A model generated the notes under the pieces. That model saw only the letters and a program-made list of their open reading frames with translations. It was not told where the DNA came from and ran no database searches. From NCBI GenBank assembly GCA_024704765.1, contig JAKMXF010000144.1:186001-250000 (forward strand): a stretch of 64,000 bases of DNA, in the 5' to 3' direction. The translations under genes and the position numbers were made by a program. The DNA is from Oopsacas minuta (Eukaryota > Animalia > Porifera). The first letter of the stretch is position 1. The number at the start of each line of letters is the position of its first letter. This document shows positions 30,201 to 53,200 of this stretch, in pieces.

Positions 30201-33200
30201 TCATTTCTTCCCGCCACCTCAGGAGTACTTGTTCCAGATCCCTGAGGACATGACTCCTGTCCAGAGGAAGGCTATGGAGACCCTGCGTGAGATGGGATTC
30301 GATATCTCTAACAGCAAGCTGATCGAAGGTGTCCGTAAGAATGGTGACAACATCCAAGCCACCGTTGAGGAGATGCTTAAGAAATAGTGCGCCATTTGTG
30401 CCACTTTAGGCCCATGGTAACTCAGGATGGTAATTAGATCTTGGTTGCTATGGTAGTAAGTAAAGTATTTAGTATTAGTATAAGACTCATGCCTCTTCAT
30501 GTACCAAGAACCTCTCACATGAATCAAACAACAAAAGAGAAGAAAAGTTGAATTCTTGTGTTGTTTGTTTGTTTGTTATTGTTTATCTCTAATAAAGTGT
30601 GTTACATATACTTTAGTCTTATTTTAATAGGGGAAATATGTTATAAGGCCACTTCTGGTGGGATATACTACCTACAGTGGAGTCTCCCAGAACGGACACA
30701 AGCGATGTTCCTAACGTGTCTGTTATTCGGAGAGTCTACGGTAATATCTACTTAACACCTGTGTACCCCTCTCATATACTGTAGTGCTAATTTTGAGATC
30801 CTGTGTGGATTGCTGTCGTCCATTTTCTGAATCTGTGATTCACTGGTCTAAGTGTCTATTTAGGACTATATATATACGAGCCTTTGGCTCGTCGCTTCGC
30901 GATGAACTCGGCGCACTGCACCTCAAGGTATTCAACGGGCAAACAAACAAACAACAATTGAGATTTAATAATATTGATAAATACAGGAGATACCGGTTAT
31001 AAGAACACTCTTAGTGTATTACTAAAATTGGTTCTCATTGCCAGTGTGTTAGTATCATAACTCTGATATGAGAGTACTTTTCTTTAATATGGTTTCTACA
31101 TACAAATGTGCTTAAAGGAAGTGTTCTCATAACCGGTATCTATACCGGTTATGAGAACTTATGTCCAGTCCCCAACCATGTTCTTATAACCGTCATTCAT
31201 GTATATATTATTGGAACTATAAATAGGAACAAACTAAAGATGGTTTCGACGGGAAATTGAACGCTGAATTGAGTAAGTTAAGACTCTCCCACTCAGGATA
31301 CTCAAGGGATATGGAGACACAATTAAGTGGCTGTAGTGAGAAGTTGAAGGTGACAAAACGTGAAGTAGAGACACTACGTAATCAGCTGATTGAAGCTAAA
31401 CGGAAAGAAGTGGCATTAGTGGCACAAAATGAGACACTTTCGACACAATCTGCCACTTTAACTCATAAATTTGAACTGAATAGCATAGGTAAGTAATTTA
31501 TTAAATTATCTCTAATAATAGTGTATGGAAAGGTGTGAAAAGTGGCTTAATGTGTCCTAATCAAATGCTCACATCTAGTGCTGTCTGTCGGGATATTTTC
31601 AAAGTTTTCCTCGCTCGATCCATCGCGACAGCTTTCACTTCTTGCTCGCTTTCATTCAAAATAGTTTCGTTTTGTATCACAGACTGTCTCTTCAGCATTC
31701 CCATTTTCCTCTCCCCTTCTGCACTCCCTGGTCTATCGGGGTAATCCTCTGGAATAGTTGTCTCCTCGTCAAATGAATTAACCTCCACCAAGCTCCTCCT
31801 GCGTACCACTCCAAAAGTAACACCTTTCTTAGATTTCTTCACTTCTTCAACAATTACTTCTTCTTTCATAAATCTCAAAAATCTTTTCGCATAAAATGAC
31901 GGTTTTTGAACTGAGATAGTTTCTTTGTTGATCACGATCGATTTCACTGCGTGTTCGATTCTTTTTTTCGCTCGGAAATTCTGTAATATATCTATAACAC
32001 CTATGAAGAGTATCACAAAATCACCATCAGGAAGTTTGGCGGGGAAACCACCAGGTGGCACAGTGGCTAAATGTGTCGCGAGTTCGATTGAGTTCTTAAT
32101 CGTTGGACAGTCGTAACATGAGTTCATATTGATAGACATTCTACTTCGAAGGATAGATCTGGGCTTCTTTATAGTGCAACTAACCTGTGCCACATTTTCT
32201 GCCTCTTTTAACACCTGTGTCACATTGTGTACCCCCACCAATAGGCTGTAGTCCATGATATCAAAACTTTCTAACACGTCACAATCACGTTTCAAAACGT
32301 CCATTAACAGATCGCGTTTGTCCTCTGTCATAATTATGCCTTTTGGAAATTTATCTTGAAAATCGATGTCTTTTTGTGTTGGTGGCATGGCGCCCTGTGC
32401 CACTTCAGTTTCAGGAGCTTTTCTGTGATAACTCGAGCCCTTTAGATCGTATTTCAATTGATACTTAATATTTGTCGGTAGGACATTGTTCATAATTACG
32501 AATCGCATCGATCTAATCACAGTTTGGTAACCGAATAATCCGAAGAATTTAGGGATTAATGTTTTACTGTTTTGATGCAGGTTCATCCAGTAGCCGGGGA
32601 GTAACTGTTGCAAGAACCTCGCCTCTTTGTCTGAGACCGTTTTCAGGATATAGTTGTCGTCCTCTGTGATGAATAACAAGGATCCACTTGCTCCGGGGTT
32701 GTGTAGAGCTTTAAGTGGCATCTGACAGATGGAATCGATAAATTCGTTTTGATTAATGCCGAATTGTTTCCGCAAATGATGGAATGTTTCGCTCGCATAA
32801 CTTTTGAATGTAAAAGAATTCGAATTATGCGACGGAGTCTTTCCTGAACCTTCTTTCGGAAAGCTAGTTGACTCAATCGAATTGAAGTCCCGCATCAAAA
32901 TATCCTTTTTCCCTTTCGTATTCAAAAGTGCATGTTCAATGCCCAACTGGAGGCAACTGAGTATTTCCATGTGTTCAGAAGTTGTATAGTTCAGATTTGA
33001 TATCTCTGCCATTCTCCCTATTTTATACAAAAATGAAAACTTTCAGTGAAAGGACTCCAGATTGTTTTCTGAATTCATTTATTTATACAACGCCATATGC
33101 GTAAGAACTCTAAGTAATTCTGGTGTTACTGGAACCATAGCTTATAGTTCCAGTTTGTGAGTGGCATAAGGTTAAATAGAGTTCAAACGAAAGATCAGTT

Positions 33201-45837: not shown

Positions 45838-46626
45838 ATGTCGGTAATTCTAAAAGTGTATTACGTCGAATCAGATGAATTGGAACCAACAGAAATTCGA
45901 CGGTTTCTATGGCAACTGAGTGGTTTGAAAGAATTGCTTGAAAAAATATCCAACATATTTTCTGTACAATTGGAACCGGAACTAATAACTTTATATAATA
46001 CAGGAGTGTCAGGAGAAAAATTGTATTTAAAATCTGATTTGGATTTGGAAACTGTTTTTGAACAAGCTCCTAGACAGTCAACACTCAAGCTATGGGTTAC
46101 TAGGAACGAGCCTCTGGAATGTGAACCTAAAGTTATTTCCAGTTCAATTCGTGAAGACTATGTAACCCAATCTAGCGAGGAAATAGAAAGTGATTTTTTA
46201 GGCTCTAGAAATGAATTTGATAGTTTACAAACAAGTAGCAGTATTCCTAAACCGGAACCAACTAATGAATTTGGAACTATAGATCTTATCAAATCTCAAA
46301 AAAAGATTTCTGAAGGTTTGCTGAGAGCAGATTCAGAAAGTTCTAAGTTAGATGCGAGATTTAATACTTCATATGGTAAGTCAAGTTTCTCTAGTACATT
46401 TGCACAAATTGCCAAAGATTTTGGCGCCTGTTTTTCGCCATGTGGGTCTGGACAAACGACCCCTTCCTTCACGGACCTGCCCCCACAATTCGTGGAGTCT
46501 CTGTGTACCCTGAGGGAGATGGGTTTCGACGTGGAGAATCCGAACGTGCTAAAGATACTTCGTAGGAACAACGGCGAACTTGAACAGACACTAACTGAAG
46601 TAATGGATTCCGGAATTGATTGTTAA
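45838..46626 (+). CDS. Second p62-like protein (PB1-like + UBA, no ZZ), intronless
   Basis: MSVILKVY..EPTEIRRF..LKLWV parallels the first p62. UBA TLREMGFDVEN is nearly identical to TLREMGFDISN. Confidence 0.8.
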   Translation: MSVILKVYYVESDELEPTEIRRFLWQLSGLKELLEKISNIFSVQLEPELITLYNTGVSGEKLYLKSDLDLETVFEQAPRQSTLKLWVTRNEPLECEPKVISSSIREDYVTQSSEEIESDFLGSRNEFDSLQTSSSIPKPEPTNEFGTIDLIKSQKKISEGLLRADSESSKLDARFNTSYGKSSFSSTFAQIAKDFGACFSPCGSGQTTPSFTDLPPQFVESLCTLREMGFDVENPNVLKILRRNNGELEQTLTEVMDSGIDC

Positions 46627-47249: not shown

Positions 47250-50200
47250 TTAGTACTTTGGTTCCGGTAGCCTGTTCCTGTGGGTTTGATTCAATTTACA
47301 CGGGTAGCGGGATTCTTGTTCTGCTTCATGTATCCATTTGTTACAAACTACATGGAAGTAAGATATATAAAATTAATTGTACCACCCGAAGGTGTGAATT
47401 TTAGGCATGTGATCTACACACTTTCTAAAGGCTAATTCAGTCCAAGCCCTTTAGAAAGTGAACTTGGACTATTCCTGGTATTTACTTACCTATTTTCGCC
47501 CCCACTAACACGGGACAGCCAGCGTGTCTCGTGAGGTCATCAGATTTGCCAGAAGCTAGCAAGTTGAACCAGAATACAGCATCTCCCTACACACAATATT
47601 ATTGAGGTTAGTGCCTAGGTTTTGAAACACTCAATTACGTGGGTACAGGCCTTAAAACTTTTGTCCAAGGGGACTATTCGTTGGCCCATTTGTGACCTTA
47701 TCAATAACATACCTTTACAGGTAGGACTCTGGCTCCTGCTAGAGGGAACACAGTAGCTCCACCTTGCTCAACATCACTCAGCTAAACAACAAACAATAAA
47801 CAATAACAACCAATAAATTCAAAAAAGCACTACACAAATGTTTATTTTAAACTTTTATTATGTCCAACAATGTAACAACACCTATTCCATCCAAATCATG
47901 TTACACTTATTCTTAGCGATGAACTCATCAAGTAATTCCAGAATGTGTCGATCACCTTTGTGTCTTTGGTTCACCACGACACATTCAATATGCTCTGACA
48001 ACTCAATTGGTCCATGTATCTGAACCTCTTTATACTGTTGGATGATGTCAGAATTCGCCCACGGTTTTTTCTTGGTTGCAACCTTTAAAATGGCGGATAG
48101 CTCTGCGTCCGTATACTCATTCAACACATGCTTATAATGCTCACAGCTTGCGATTTTAACTGTGGAATTTGAGCTATCAGCTGACGCGAATGAGGTTCGT
48201 AATCTCACACATTTTAAGATAAAGTAAGAGTCGCCATATTGTTTACAGTTTTTAACTCCACAGATGTCTCCTACAATATTTAACACCCCGTATTTGACAC
48301 GATCTGCACCCTTCACATTCTTGTAGATATTATTGAAAATATTGTCCTCCCAACGGGATCTTGCCACCAAGTCTCTGCTACCATGGCTAGTTCCAGTTTC
48401 AAATTGGTTTTTGTAATTGGTTTCCGTCATCAAAATTGGTAGCAATTTGTCTATGAAGACATGGATAATAATCGGAGCTTCGAAGTTAACCCATTCAAGG
48501 GTCTTCTCCAAATCGTCTTTTGCGAATCCAAGTTTTACAATTCGTTGTGACAATATACTCGCCGCCCCATCTGACAACTTTTTTGCGTTCTTGACAACAT
48601 AATCCATCGCGGCATGTTGCTCCTTGGTTAGTGCAGCAGTCGCCCAATCAATATCAGCCAAATTAGGTGTGAATTTCTTATATCTACTTATGTCACCTAA
48701 CAGCATGTCGTCACAAGATTTTATATGTTGGTCGAATTCCTGAGGGAGTATGTCCATGAGACAGGACAAACATCTAATCCAATTCTTCCTATTCAATTCT
48801 GTGTATTCAGACTGTTGGGTGCCGAGGCACTGAATCCTGTGCGTCTCCATTTCCATGGGATTTATTTCTAGAAAGCACACCCCGCATATATTATCCTTTT
48901 TCACAGGTGGCAGTTTGCATGTGTGCTCGCTGGAGGTGCATTCTTGGGAACATCGGAGGCACAGTTTGAAGGGATTGGGCTTGGGTTCAGGGTTAGGGAC
49001 AGGTGTCGGGGGTTTACAGTGATCAGTGTGGTCGGGTAAAATTGTGATTAAGAAGAGTTTATTACAATAATGACACTTCCCTTCTTCTGCATCGCGACAC
49101 TCATCATAATGTTTTGGTAACTCCTCCACTTTGAAATCTTTCTCACAAATTGGACATTTGTCCATTTCCCCAAATGCTTGGTGGGGGACACTTGGGAAGA
49201 ACAGAGGTGTGCCACTGGCAAAAGATGGTTCGGGTTTCACACCTTCATCCATTGGCTCTAGGTCTTCGCTTGGCGTTATGTGAGTGGGACTTTTCTCAGG
49301 AATTTCAGGGGGAGGTGGCTTAATTGTGTCGGAACGTTCAGATTTAAATGGCATTATGGCAGACTCGTGGTTGGGTGGCAGACTTGGGTAAGTGACATCG
49401 ATTATTTCAACATCTGATCCATGTCTCCGGAGACACTCTTCCGCATGTTGTTTTAACCTTGTCATTGTGAACTTATTATCACACCTCCGACAGATCTCAT
49501 CCTCCACTTCTAAAGATACCATATCTGGCATGGTGGTCATTGTGGCATGATCCTCGAAATCTTTGTATGTTATTTCAGATAGCATGGTTTCTAGAGAGCC
49601 TATTGGTTGACACTTCTCCAAATGTGCCACGTAAGTGTCCCCATCAAATTCCTGGCCACATGCGACACACTTAATTAACTCAGTATCATCATGAGTGTCA
49701 GATAATGTGTCGCTTGTGTCGACTGTGTCCGGATTACAGGAACACTCCTCATTTAAGTGGAGTTTCATTAGTTCGCTGTCAATATTTTTTCCACAATAAA
49801 TACATTCGGTTAGCAGTGGCTCTGTTTTGAAACATTCCTCATTCACATCTAGGTAACTAGGGTTGTATGGAGGTGGGGGAATTGACTCGCATGGCTCACA
49901 TGGCATTTCGTTGGTTTGCGTCCCCAAGAAACTTGGGTTGAACTTTGGAGGTCTGTCTTTGGCATCGATTGAGGCTATGGCAGTGGCACGAGGTGGTAGG
50001 GGAGGTGGTATGCTCTCAGGTTCAAACATTGGTCCAGTCTCAAAGTGGCATGGTGGTGAGCCACTCTCGATTTCTGGGTTACAAATTGGTTGAAGAAAAT
50101 GTGGCGCGCTAAGTGGCCTCCCAAAAATTGACGAGGGGTCAGTTGATCCTTTTGATGGATGAATAGAAAACTCAAATTCAGAATCAGAAGTGGCATAAAG

Positions 50201-53200
50201 TGGTCTGTTATAGTCCGCAATTAATGTTTTACTCAACCCAGGTGATAACCGATTGGTATCTGTTTGATGGAAGGGCAATCGAGATCCGACCACAAATTCT
50301 GGCCTCACCAAGGGTTGCGTGTTCGGGTAAGGTACCGACCCAATTCTACCCCAATCAAGAGTGGCATACTGATGTGGCTGAATTGGGTTGAACCTGTGAC
50401 TAGGTGGCGGATAACCAATCACATTTCTTGTATCGGTGCTATTCGTATACGGATGGAATGGTTTTATTTGATTGGGTACTGAGGGATGCGAAATTGGACG
50501 AAGTGGCATGTAATGTGGCTCTGTTGACATTTTCTGAGGGATATATACAGGCGACACATTGTTAGCTGGTTGACATGTGGGTAATGTTAATTGTGGCTTC
50601 ATTTCAGGATAAAAGTTGTAAGCAAAGGGATTAGTTTGTTGGTTCATTCCTAGTGGATCATATTTATGATAAGTGTCGTCACACGGTCTGGTGGTTTGTG
50701 AAGTGGCATTTTGTGCCATATCACACGGAGGTGTTACAATTGTGGCACCCTTGTTCATATCATATCTTATGGCGTTTTGAAAGGTGGGATTTTGTGAAAA
50801 TTCACAAGATGTACCTTTTCCAAAAGTGTCAATGTGGTTTCTAAAATTTATGCTGTTTTGATAAATATTATTAGGTGTGATAGTGGCATACGGGTCCGTA
50901 ACATCTGGAACTAGTGACTGAGTAGGTGTTTGAGGGTTTAGTGACATAATAGAGCCAATTTTGGTATCCTGACACTGCATACGAGGCTGATACATGGTCT
51001 GGTTATAGAATTTAGAATGTTGACTAGGAAAGGGGGTATATTGTATATTATTCTGAAGTGGTTTTTGTGGCTCAATTGTGGCAGGGTGGCTCGGGACATA
51101 CGACATAGGAGCTGTAGTGGTTTGCTCCCGTTGTGTCATAAGTGGAATTGTGCCGGCCATTAGTGTCGCTTCCATATCATCGATTCCTTCGACATGCTTT
51201 TGACCATATCCTGTAACTAGGACATCTCTGACACTTTCTGGCTTCGAAACTTTATAGTTACGCTCTGGAATGCCTTGGTTTGAATTTTCATAATGTCGAG
51301 TTGTTAAAGGTGGCAGAGAATGTGGTACATTACAGAAAGTGGCATGACTGTAAGGATCACCACTTGAACTCATTAGTCACTAATTGAAATCTAAATTGTC
51401 ATAATTAAAGGGTACAAGTAGCGACACAAAAGTGGCTATTGGGCAGCGCGCGACAGTTTTATGACACCTTTAAATAAACTCCAAAAGTGGCAGACTGTAA
51501 ATCAGACAATTTCCTAAGAATTGAGTATAGCTGATGAATTTATATTAACCATATGGGTGTATATAAATACAGCAATGATTGCAACCATGAATACTCACGT
51601 AATACAGAATTGTTGCAATTCTATTTCTGTCATTTCCACGGAATGATTTTATCTCATCTCCCTAGATACATAATGGGTTATTGGAATGCTTATAAACTTA
51701 CATAGAATAGAATTGTCGCTATTCGGTTGCCAAAGCCACCACCATATGCATCTTTCTTGTTCTAAAAATAGATAGTTCCATATAAATTTAGTATTTGCAT
51801 TTGGGACTATACGCTCGAATAAAAACCCTCTAATTCCTTGGAAGGGTTACGCCACGTTTGAACGACACATATATGTATAACTCTGCCACAAAATATACGA
51901 ATAACAATTAGCCGTTGTAGAAGAGCTATTATATACATATTGTGTGTATGGAGTAACTTGACTCTCCAAATAGAATATAAAACTCCTGTGAAGATATGTA
52001 TAGGAATTCCTGTACTAATATTGCTTTGTAGTTTGTATGCTTTTTACTATTACATATAGTGGCTCAGTTCTACATGGGTGATTATATATATATTTGTTTT
52101 CGCTCTGCTGTTCACACCTTTAGAGATTAAGACACCAAATTTGGCATGTGTACTTGTAGTGACATCTAGTTGTGCACCTGATACTTGAAAAATTTCTAAT
52201 GTGTATATTTTCACACCTTTTGACACCTCTGTATTTTAACGCAATCAGATGGTAGGGTGTTACAATTAGGCATTAATGCATAAAATTAGTTTTGATGGAA
52301 TGTATTTGTATTGATGTAGACTGTAATTCTATTGGGCAATACATTCTATTAATATATATATACACTGATTTATCATATGATTAATCATATTTTCACACTT
52401 TTGATTAACATTCAAAATGATCATAGGGATTAGCTTCCACTTGTCAAATAGGGTAAACAAGGACGTAGAATTCGGTTGTGACACTTGTGAATGTCTAACA
52501 AGATTAGTAAAATTCAATATTCTCCATATTTTGCGGTGGATTAATTATATTATGAGGGACAGTTTACTGACAGAGTTCAGATATTTATATTAACTTACCC
52601 TCGCGTGGTCATAATGTGGCTCATAGTGTCCTCCAATGCCATAGACACCTAACTAAAATCAAAGAATATATAAATCATATTCTAACACATTCCTAGCGTC
52701 ACCATGGTTACCTGTAGGTCTTCAGCAGTGTCCATTTCGAGTCCAGTAATATCTTCTAATCTCTGATTAACAATAGGAAATATTTCCATGTCGTCATTGT
52801 TACTTAACCAAGAGCTTTTTGCGATTCTGTAGTCAGCTGGCTCGAATTTCCCGCTCAGATGGTTTCGAGCTGTCGCTCGGTATAACTAAATGGGTTGAAT
52901 CATATAAATACCTTCCAGGCACTCTCATTACTATGAAAACTAGTCGATAAATAGAATTGAAACTTGGAAATTAATATCAGAGTTGGTAAGTATGACAGTG
53001 GGATATTTAAGAGACTCTTGGTCTATTTCTCACCTTTTGCTTCCCTAGTTCTTCTATTCTAGTCATCTGTACCTCAGAGAGCACCTGTCTAAGCGAGTAT
53101 ATCCTTGGTGTGTCGTGTAGCATCTCTATCTTAGCAGGGTTGTATAGAAGATTTAAGGTTTTACTGTTTGAGTAATAAAAACACTTCAGTTTACGCTCTC

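Follow-up and report, generated by a model that had tools for sequence, protein, structure and literature searches.

An intronless zinc-finger/DUF3626 gene nested on the same strand within a catalytic-domain intron of the collagen prolyl 4-hydroxylase alpha gene of the glass sponge Oopsacas minuta

The window analysed here, a 64,000-nucleotide (nt) stretch of the genome of the glass sponge Oopsacas minuta (assembly GCA_024704765.1, contig JAKMXF010000144.1, positions 186,001 to 250,000), carries on its minus strand a gene for a collagen prolyl 4-hydroxylase alpha subunit (P4HA), and the intron that splits the catalytic core of this host gene encloses, on the same strand, a complete second gene, the guest, which encodes a protein with seven C2HC finger motifs and a C-terminal DUF3626 domain. 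The host/guest pair is genuine and conserved, as was confirmed by its recurrence in five other assemblies, and an assembly chimera is excluded. With a probability of roughly 0.6, the sequence signals at the locus point to the guest being an independent unit which the host reads through and splices across; the built-in switch between collagen hydroxylation and guest expression that the initial annotation of the window had put forward found no support in the sequence. New here are the corrected gene model and an animal SopF-fold protein with multiple C2HC fingers.

The host gene

P4HA was read from the sequence as 12 exons running from 54855 to 47250, with AG/GT at every boundary. The evidence was gathered exon by exon, and the Pfam scans were performed on single exons.

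54531..54855, minus strand: exon 1, signal peptide and P4Ha_N, ATG at 54855 (Pfam P4Ha_N, 3.9e-14)
54016..54241, minus strand: exon 2, end of P4Ha_N (Pfam P4Ha_N, 1.9e-06; AG/GT boundaries)
53783..53943, minus strand: exon 3, putative TPR peptide-substrate-binding domain (Pfam TPR_P4H, 5.2e-05, below the cut-off; orthologous exon in five assemblies)
53500..53690, minus strand: exon 4 (boundaries and cross-assembly tblastn)
53034..53210, minus strand: exon 5 (boundaries, cross-assembly tblastn, alignment to full-length P4HA)
52712..52885, minus strand: exon 6, start of the catalytic domain (boundaries, cross-assembly tblastn, alignment to full-length P4HA)
52599..52652, minus strand: exon 7, Fe-binding H-x-D (EPHYDHA) (100% identity in five assemblies; aligns to full-length P4HAs)
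51702..51761, minus strand: exon 8a, NKKDAYGGGFGNRIATILFY, phase 0-0 (P0113 residues 463-476; kept in loci L002, L011, L012 and L014)
51599..51661, minus strand: exon 8b, GDEIKSFRGNDRNRIATILYY, tandem duplicate of 8a, phase 0-0, 40 nt beyond 8a
47713..47781, minus strand: exon 9, beginning LSDVEQGGATVF, with a (TTG)n-TTTAG acceptor in front (aligns to 7zsc_A residues 185-207)
47490..47586, minus strand: exon 10, distal Fe-binding His and 2-oxoglutarate-binding Lys, TRHAGCPVLVGAKI (7zsc_A residues 208-238, E 3.3e-09)
47250..47347, minus strand: exon 11 with stop codon (boundaries, cross-assembly tblastn, alignment to full-length P4HA)

The P4Ha_N domain scored 53.1 bits on exon 1 and 28.1 bits on exon 2 against a cut-off of 25.3, while TPR_P4H, scanned on exon 3 by itself, reached 23.7 bits against a cut-off of 27. 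Exons 8a and 8b close in phase 0 with NRIATILFY and NRIATILYY and run into GTAAGT/GTGAGT donors, and exon 9 begins in phase 0 directly 3' of ttgtttag. The initial annotation had held that these NRIATIL(F/Y)Y exons must join the phase-0 exon at 47781, which was borne out both by the alignment to the catalytic domain of human P4HA2 (7zsc_A), in which exons 9 and 10 cover the consecutive residues 185-207 and 208-238, and by natural full-length P4HAs of a representative library (P0113, P0142, P0145 and others), which in tblastn are collinear over the intron in the order exons 1 to 7, 8a and 9 to 11. P0113, for instance, places residues 463-476 on exon 8a and residues 475-528 on exons 9 and 10. Intron 8 divides the catalytic domain between the strand that ends in NRIATIL(F/Y)Y and LSDVEQGG. 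A direct reading locates the HYD of the active site in exon 7, whereas the distal His and the Lys, spaced 10 residues apart, are both in exon 10 and so downstream of the guest; as the annotation had also stated, a host RNA ended at the guest polyadenylation (poly(A)) site would therefore lose both residues.

The host thus appears, from sequence, to be the only collagen prolyl 4-hydroxylase alpha gene of the genome, as P4Ha_N was confined to this one locus in a six-frame search. A six-frame search of the genome with PF13640 did not detect the P4HA of the window, because its catalytic exons are too short. A separate locus, L005 (C110:580680-583967), was observed to hold an intronless open reading frame (ORF) of 498 amino acids (aa) with a 2OG-FeII_Oxy_3 domain and without P4Ha_N, which we take to resemble an OGFOD1/Tpa1-type prolyl hydroxylase.

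Exons 8a and 8b (20 and 21 aa, phase 0-0) are duplicated in all complete loci with 40-44 nt between them (window 51599-51761, minus strand; L002 9698-9862; L011 12126-12289; L012 13260-13426; L014 13200-13363), an arrangement consistent with mutually exclusive use; a PDB sequence search with these two short exons gave no matches. A TATA-like box conserved in six assemblies lies 33-38 nt upstream of the P4HA ATG (54856-54900, minus strand), and its closeness to the start codon implies a very short 5' untranslated region.

The nested gene and its predicted product

In agreement with the initial annotation, which had placed a zinc-finger/DUF3626 ORF on the host strand between the two parts of P4HA, the guest lies wholly between exon 8b and exon 9, with in-frame stops immediately upstream of its ATG, so that its entire coding sequence sits in one intron flanked by exons of a single host gene.

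47782..51598, minus strand: host intron 8, 3,817 nt, between exon 8b and exon 9, containing the whole guest
51374..51598, minus strand: guest 5' spacer, 225 nt, with two GCCACTT (51491-51485, 51436-51430) and TTAG at 51383-51380, 6 nt before the ATG
47882..51373, minus strand: guest ORF, 1,163 aa, intronless, stop TAG included (orthologues of 789-1,567 aa at the same intron in five assemblies)
49814..51373, minus strand: guest aa 1-520, Pro/Thr/Ser/Asn/Gln-rich and fast-evolving (composition; 25-33% identity or no match between species)
48713..49804, minus strand: guest aa 524-887, seven C-x2-C-x12-H-x3-5-C (C2HC, UBZ-like) motifs (pattern scan)
47885..48661, minus strand: guest aa 905-1163, DUF3626, predicted SopF-like ADP-ribosyltransferase fold with putative H971/Y1028/E1116 triad (Pfam PF12294, AlphaFold, Foldseek)
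47841..47859, minus strand: two AATAAA (47859-47854 and 47846-47841), 23 and 36 nt past the guest stop

The positions of the seven finger motifs are mostly kept in the orthologues, although against Pfam they remain below threshold (zf-C2HC_2 17 bits, cut-off 27; Sgf11 likewise). The C-terminus matched DUF3626 (PF12294) with 60.9 bits against a cut-off of 27. Relatives of the guest at 30-60% identity are widespread in eukaryotic data; PF12294 is carried by 72 of them, and their additional domains include zf-C2HC_2 in a coral protein and UBA, UBA-like or WWE in others. An NCBIfam search gave no matches, and exact-product look-ups for the guest and for the coral relative P0005 returned no record. 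Just two DUF3626 loci, the guest included, are present in the genome, which argues against the guest being a transposon or other mobile element; it is a probably autonomous, intronless gene, single-copy apart from one distant paralogue.

An AlphaFold model of the C-terminal domain, built from a 39-sequence alignment, had a mean predicted local distance difference test (pLDDT) score of 93.3, and its best Foldseek match in the PDB was SopF (7dn8_A, E 1.3e-10, template-modelling score 0.71), followed by DarT, CopC/OspC3 and Tpt1, all of which are ADP-ribosyltransferase folds. The modelled domain thus best matches a SopF-type ADP-ribosyltransferase fold; a PDB sequence search with the C-terminus gave no matches, the link to SopF coming from the fold search only. 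Diphtheria-toxin-like ADP-ribosyltransferases use an H-Y-E triad, and H971, Y1028 and E1116 of the guest, which are invariant or nearly so in the family alignment and lie on strands of the model, could represent such a triad.

The Salmonella effector SopF is a DUF3626 protein (PMC6682159) and acts as an ARF-activated ADP-ribosyltransferase on the V-ATPase subunit ATP6V0C, with an I-Y-E triad (PMC10333799). The guest C-terminus has in common with this type III secretion effector (PDB 7DN8/7DN9) the Pfam family and, on the model, the ADP-ribosyltransferase fold. It differs in being part of a gene of the animal itself, in having a sequence only about 15% identical to that of SopF, in the His which the predicted H-Y-E triad would have in place of the SopF Ile, and in the seven C2HC fingers and the lengthy disordered region to which it is fused. 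Animals and many protists therefore carry SopF-fold proteins of their own, relatives of which are found fused to C2HC fingers, UBA or WWE modules, so that SopF might be a mimic or a descendant of an ADP-ribosyltransferase native to eukaryotes and tied to ubiquitin signalling.

Conservation of the nested arrangement

For comparison, six loci from five ENA assemblies, glass-sponge-like in character, were collected by way of the orthologues P0002 and P0003 and of exon-1-like products, and their layout was established by tblastn with each exon of the window and with three pieces of the guest. The order exons 1 to 7, 8a, 8b, guest, 9, 10 and 11 was found in L002, L011, L012 and L014, and in the fifth sample exon 8b, the guest and exons 9 to 11 lie on L001 while exons 1 to 7 lie on a separate contig, L013, so that the order exon 8b, guest, exon 9 recurs in all five. 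The host exons are 45-100% identical across the assemblies (64-100% if exon 3 is set aside) and the C-terminal domain of the guest is 72-80% identical between species, whereas the non-coding spacers barely align. The flanks are likewise syntenic with the window, with ParcG, LisH-WD40, TRAF or NHL genes upstream and p62-like, hexapeptide-repeat and HSP70 genes downstream. The recurrence of this layout means that it is due neither to chance nor to a chimeric assembly, the latter being what the initial annotation had named as one of its fatal objections while calling for the site to be examined in other sponges, and the conservation of layout, exons and guest domain together indicates that the arrangement is real, old and under selection.

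That the contig is a chimera, or that a dead retrocopy or transposon insertion has broken P4HA, may thus be regarded as effectively refuted. What might suggest it is that the guest, a single extended ORF free of introns, occupies the longest host intron, and that the host is distributed over two contigs in sample ERZ25072730. Against this stand the five independent assemblies, produced with different assemblers, as well as the intactness of all host exons and the conservation of the guest C-terminus; there are no repeats in the region and, like the guest, the majority of glass-sponge genes have just one exon (Table 1 of PMC10282587). A transposon or retrocopy origin of the guest was rejected on copy number and conservation.

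In sample ERZ25072730 (L001:9458-9757 and L013), exons 1 to 7 of P4HA lie on a 9-kb, tandem-repeat-rich contig (L013) at 158x coverage, and exon 8b, the guest and exons 9 to 11 follow immediately upon LisH-WD40 on a 1.2-Mb contig (L001) covered at 289x. The split reflects either a break in the assembly or a heterozygous structural variant in which the 5' part of P4HA is missing.

A second DUF3626 gene was observed at L011:1776-3692 and is chimeric. The first 139 aa were copied from the 5' end of the NHL-repeat gene next to it (84% aa identity, with nearly identical upstream sequence), and the last 473 aa from the nested guest, to which they are 94% identical at the nt level over 1,233 nt, so that it is a recent duplication of the guest that captured the start of another gene.

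The public gene model

In the databases, the guest ORF is best matched by the NCBI O. minuta protein P0001, of 1,220 aa and named "prolyl 4-hydroxylase subunit alpha-1-like", which consists of guest residues 1-1133 joined, from a GTGAAC within the ORF at 47974, to P4HA exons 9 to 11. If this model were correct, the locus would give rise to a chimeric protein in which the C-terminus of P4HA replaces that of the guest, and P0001 does have exactly this structure, with the junction in frame. We nevertheless consider such a protein very improbable. All orthologues, and the wider family too, conserve the 30 residues that it would lose (NQRHK...NKCNMIWME), which are modelled as a helix and a strand at a pLDDT of about 98, the appended piece of P4HA is without the HxD half of the active site, and GTGAAC is a poor donor. 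In addition, the Aphrocallistes vastus (A. vastus) paper describes the same artefact in O. minuta, a nested gene annotated as an exon of another gene (PMC10282587); it counts 83 nested genes in the O. minuta annotation as compared to 2,432 in A. vastus and blames gene predictors that disallow nesting. The fusion is accordingly taken to be an annotation artefact, and the public model is to be corrected: what it describes is a zinc-finger/DUF3626 protein onto which the three final exons of P4HA have been erroneously joined, the real P4HA spanning the guest.

Signals and geometry of intron 8

Across the six species intron 8 measures 2,559-5,122 nt, and in each of them the guest ORF (789-1,567 aa) occupies about 90% of it. 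Only 102-243 nt separate the host donor from the guest ATG, and 87-324 nt lie between the guest stop and the host acceptor. TTAG lies 4-9 nt ahead of the guest ATG in all six species, with an estimated chance of about 0.035 per species; the guest start codon thus has an unpaired 3' splice acceptor shortly before it, as would be expected of a gene subject to spliced-leader (SL) trans-splicing. Acceptors of this kind, in many cases with a (TTG)n tract, are also present before the start codons of the ParcG, hexapeptide, LisH, HSP70 and NHL genes.

Apart from this TTAG and the (TTG)n tract of the host acceptor, the only conserved element of the spacers is TGCCACTTGTGTC, an element of which type is found 20-60 nt past the host donor in four of six species and which is a possible guest promoter element; the motif is common genome-wide. 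At the other end of the guest, the window has its two AATAAA 58-72 nt ahead of the exon 9 acceptor, in line with the initial annotation, which had put them at about 60 nt. A canonical AATAAA or ATTAAA follows the guest stop in three of six species (the window, L011 and L002, in the last of these 215 nt from the stop), and none was found in the guest tail of L001, L012 or L014. Rfam and repeat scans of the locus were both empty.

When exon 8b is read into the guest acceptor, the P4HA frame stops within 0-18 codons in every species, so that there is no conserved P4HA-guest fusion protein; a fusion through this acceptor was rejected on these grounds, the frame not being conserved.

Expression of host and guest

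From these signals we infer that the guest would be transcribed as its own mRNA, starting within the 100-240-nt spacer past the exon 8b donor, perhaps by means of the TGCCACTTGTGTC-type element. Its 5' end would be formed at the TTAG before the ATG, most likely by SL trans-splicing as for the neighbouring genes, and its 3' end in the tail before exon 9. For the host mRNA, the polymerase would read through the guest, the 8a or 8b donor would be joined to exon 9 and the guest would leave with the intron. SL trans-splicing of the guest fits the conservation of the TTAG near its ATG and the similar acceptors of its neighbours; it has been reported for hexactinellids (PMC7986045), and in A. vastus the leader that was identified is about 37 nt long (PMC10282587). 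The P4HA encoded by a host RNA that is cleaved at the guest poly(A) site, or in which 8b is spliced to the acceptor of the guest, would be inactive, and such transcripts would be a by-product intrinsic to same-strand nesting and not a demonstrated switch.

Several observations weigh against an independent guest unit. The exact-product look-ups gave no record for the guest, and library searches from the guest and from exon-1 products gave no RNA-derived relatives in the length ranges searched. Exon 1, compared with the whole library in search of an RNA-derived hexactinellid full-length P4HA, matched only genomic exon-sized products and distant full-length P4HAs. The 5' spacer, at 102-243 nt, is very short, the 5' spacers contain no recognisable core promoter conserved in all six species, and the GCCACTT copies upstream of the guest may be there by chance, as this motif is abundant genome-wide. 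The guest duplicate in L011 took the 5' end of another gene, which might mean that the guest has no portable promoter, and the guest tails of half the species are without canonical poly(A) hexamers.

Were the guest indeed promoterless, host and guest would form one transcription unit, the guest mRNA being cut from the P4HA pre-mRNA by SL trans-splicing at the TTAG together with polyadenylation, and each host pre-mRNA would become either P4HA or guest mRNA in a true switch operated from the P4HA promoter. This account, which we hold to be doubtful, would suit the shared strand and the tiny spacers kept on both sides in six species, the conserved acceptor before the guest ATG, the known occurrence of SL trans-splicing in glass sponges (PMC10282587, PMC7986045) and the borrowed 5' end of the L011 duplicate. 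However, the same acceptor signature also stands before ordinary, non-nested neighbours, P4HA among them, and P4HA has a TATA box of its own. In the known SL systems of nematodes, moreover, an acceptor with an upstream donor in the same RNA is cis-spliced and not trans-spliced, and by this rule exon 8b and the guest acceptor would be joined into a bicistronic RNA with a stop after the 0-18 codons mentioned above. Operons have furthermore not been reported in hexactinellids (PMC7986045).

A related proposal starts from the exon 8b donor, which faces two conserved acceptors, the guest TTAG at 100-240 nt and that of exon 9 at 2.6-5.1 kb. Use of the near acceptor, or of the guest poly(A) site, would abort P4HA and yield a guest-bearing RNA, and a regulated choice between the two acceptors would toggle the outputs. 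We judge this to be quite unlikely; if true, one promoter would serve collagen hydroxylation and a SopF-like ADP-ribosyltransferase by turns, and the guest, more than a passenger, would act as an alternative terminal gene embedded in an intron.

It would also be conceivable that the guest is transcribed separately and that P4HA is cut short ahead of its distal His and Lys through regulated cleavage at the guest poly(A) site, whereby collagen hydroxylation would be tuned inversely to guest 3'-end processing. In O. minuta the spacing of the two AATAAA from the host acceptor and the coincidence of its GU-rich (TTG)n tract with the expected position of a downstream cleavage element would lend themselves to such a mechanism, P4HA is the only gene of its kind in the genome, and cryptic polyadenylation of hosts by nested genes is documented (PMC3192792). 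Yet the hexamers are missing from three of the tails and distant from the stop in L002, the stop-to-acceptor distance ranges widely, and (TTG)n tracts and TTTGTTT words are a genome-wide feature. There is also no apparent functional link between the host and guest proteins, and as about 12% of glass-sponge genes are nested (PMC10282587) no device specific to this locus is needed. Regulated truncation of P4HA therefore seems improbable, and an independent guest that the host splices across is preferred.

Comparison with known systems

Same-strand nested genes are established in other systems as able to truncate their hosts (PMC3192792), and the competition between splicing and intronic polyadenylation is generic to same-strand nesting and not special to the P4HA locus. 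In the host/nested interference described there (intronic polyadenylation and exonisation), as would be expected here, the acceptor and poly(A) signals of a same-strand guest compete in the host pre-mRNA; those cases are mammalian and based on transcripts, whereas the P4HA pair is known from sequence and has far tighter spacers (about 100-300 nt).

Nesting is abundant in glass sponges and conserved between them, with the 2,432 nested genes of A. vastus amounting to 12.4% of its genes (PMC10282587), and the P4HA/DUF3626 pair is one case of this genome-wide habit, already a published hallmark of the group. Like other nested genes of that catalogue, such as the single-exon glassin, the guest is a single-exon gene in the intron of another, conserved, and mis-annotated in O. 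minuta; the pair is not described in PMC10282587, which gives neither strand orientation nor mode of expression, and it adds a clean, deeply conserved same-strand example. Since there is a single copy of the host, whose function is easy to assay, the two genes would offer a convenient test case for splicing across same-strand guests in a trans-splicing animal.

With the SL trans-spliced genes of nematodes, tunicates and hexactinellids (PMC7986045, PMC10282587) the guest shares a pyrimidine/AT-rich tract and TTAG a few bases before the ATG, an acceptor that is conserved across species and common to neighbouring genes; it differs from them in that leader addition to it is predicted from the acceptor. 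Operons are not known from glass sponges. The vertebrate P4HA1/2 (7ZSC) and the sponge gene both possess P4Ha_N, a TPR domain (putative in the sponge) and a 2OG-Fe(II) domain with HxD...H...K, and both have alternative duplicated exons, but in the sponge gene the intron dividing the catalytic core houses an entire foreign gene.

Other features of the window

A p62/SQSTM1-like PB1 gene lies convergently, directly beyond P4HA, in three species.

45838-46626, plus strand: p62/SQSTM1-like PB1 gene (L002 16566-17378; L011 15646-16413)

Its position beside a gene with ubiquitin-finger-like motifs and a predicted fold of the SopF family, which is related to xenophagy, may be a coincidence.

The commonest 7-mer of the window is GCCACTT, with 95 copies as compared to 5.8 expected, in the consensus T-N-T-GCCACTT-T; it is equally represented on both strands and equally frequent within and outside long ORFs, examples being the two copies in the guest 5' spacer and those at 5066-5114 and 31325-31546. 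TGTGTCG (64 copies) and AAGGTGT (63 copies) are likewise over-represented in the window. The density of GCCACTT per kb varies strongly among the related assemblies, from 2.75 in L014 through 1.48 in the window, 1.42 in L012, 1.13 in L001 and 0.39 in L011 to 0.16 in L002.

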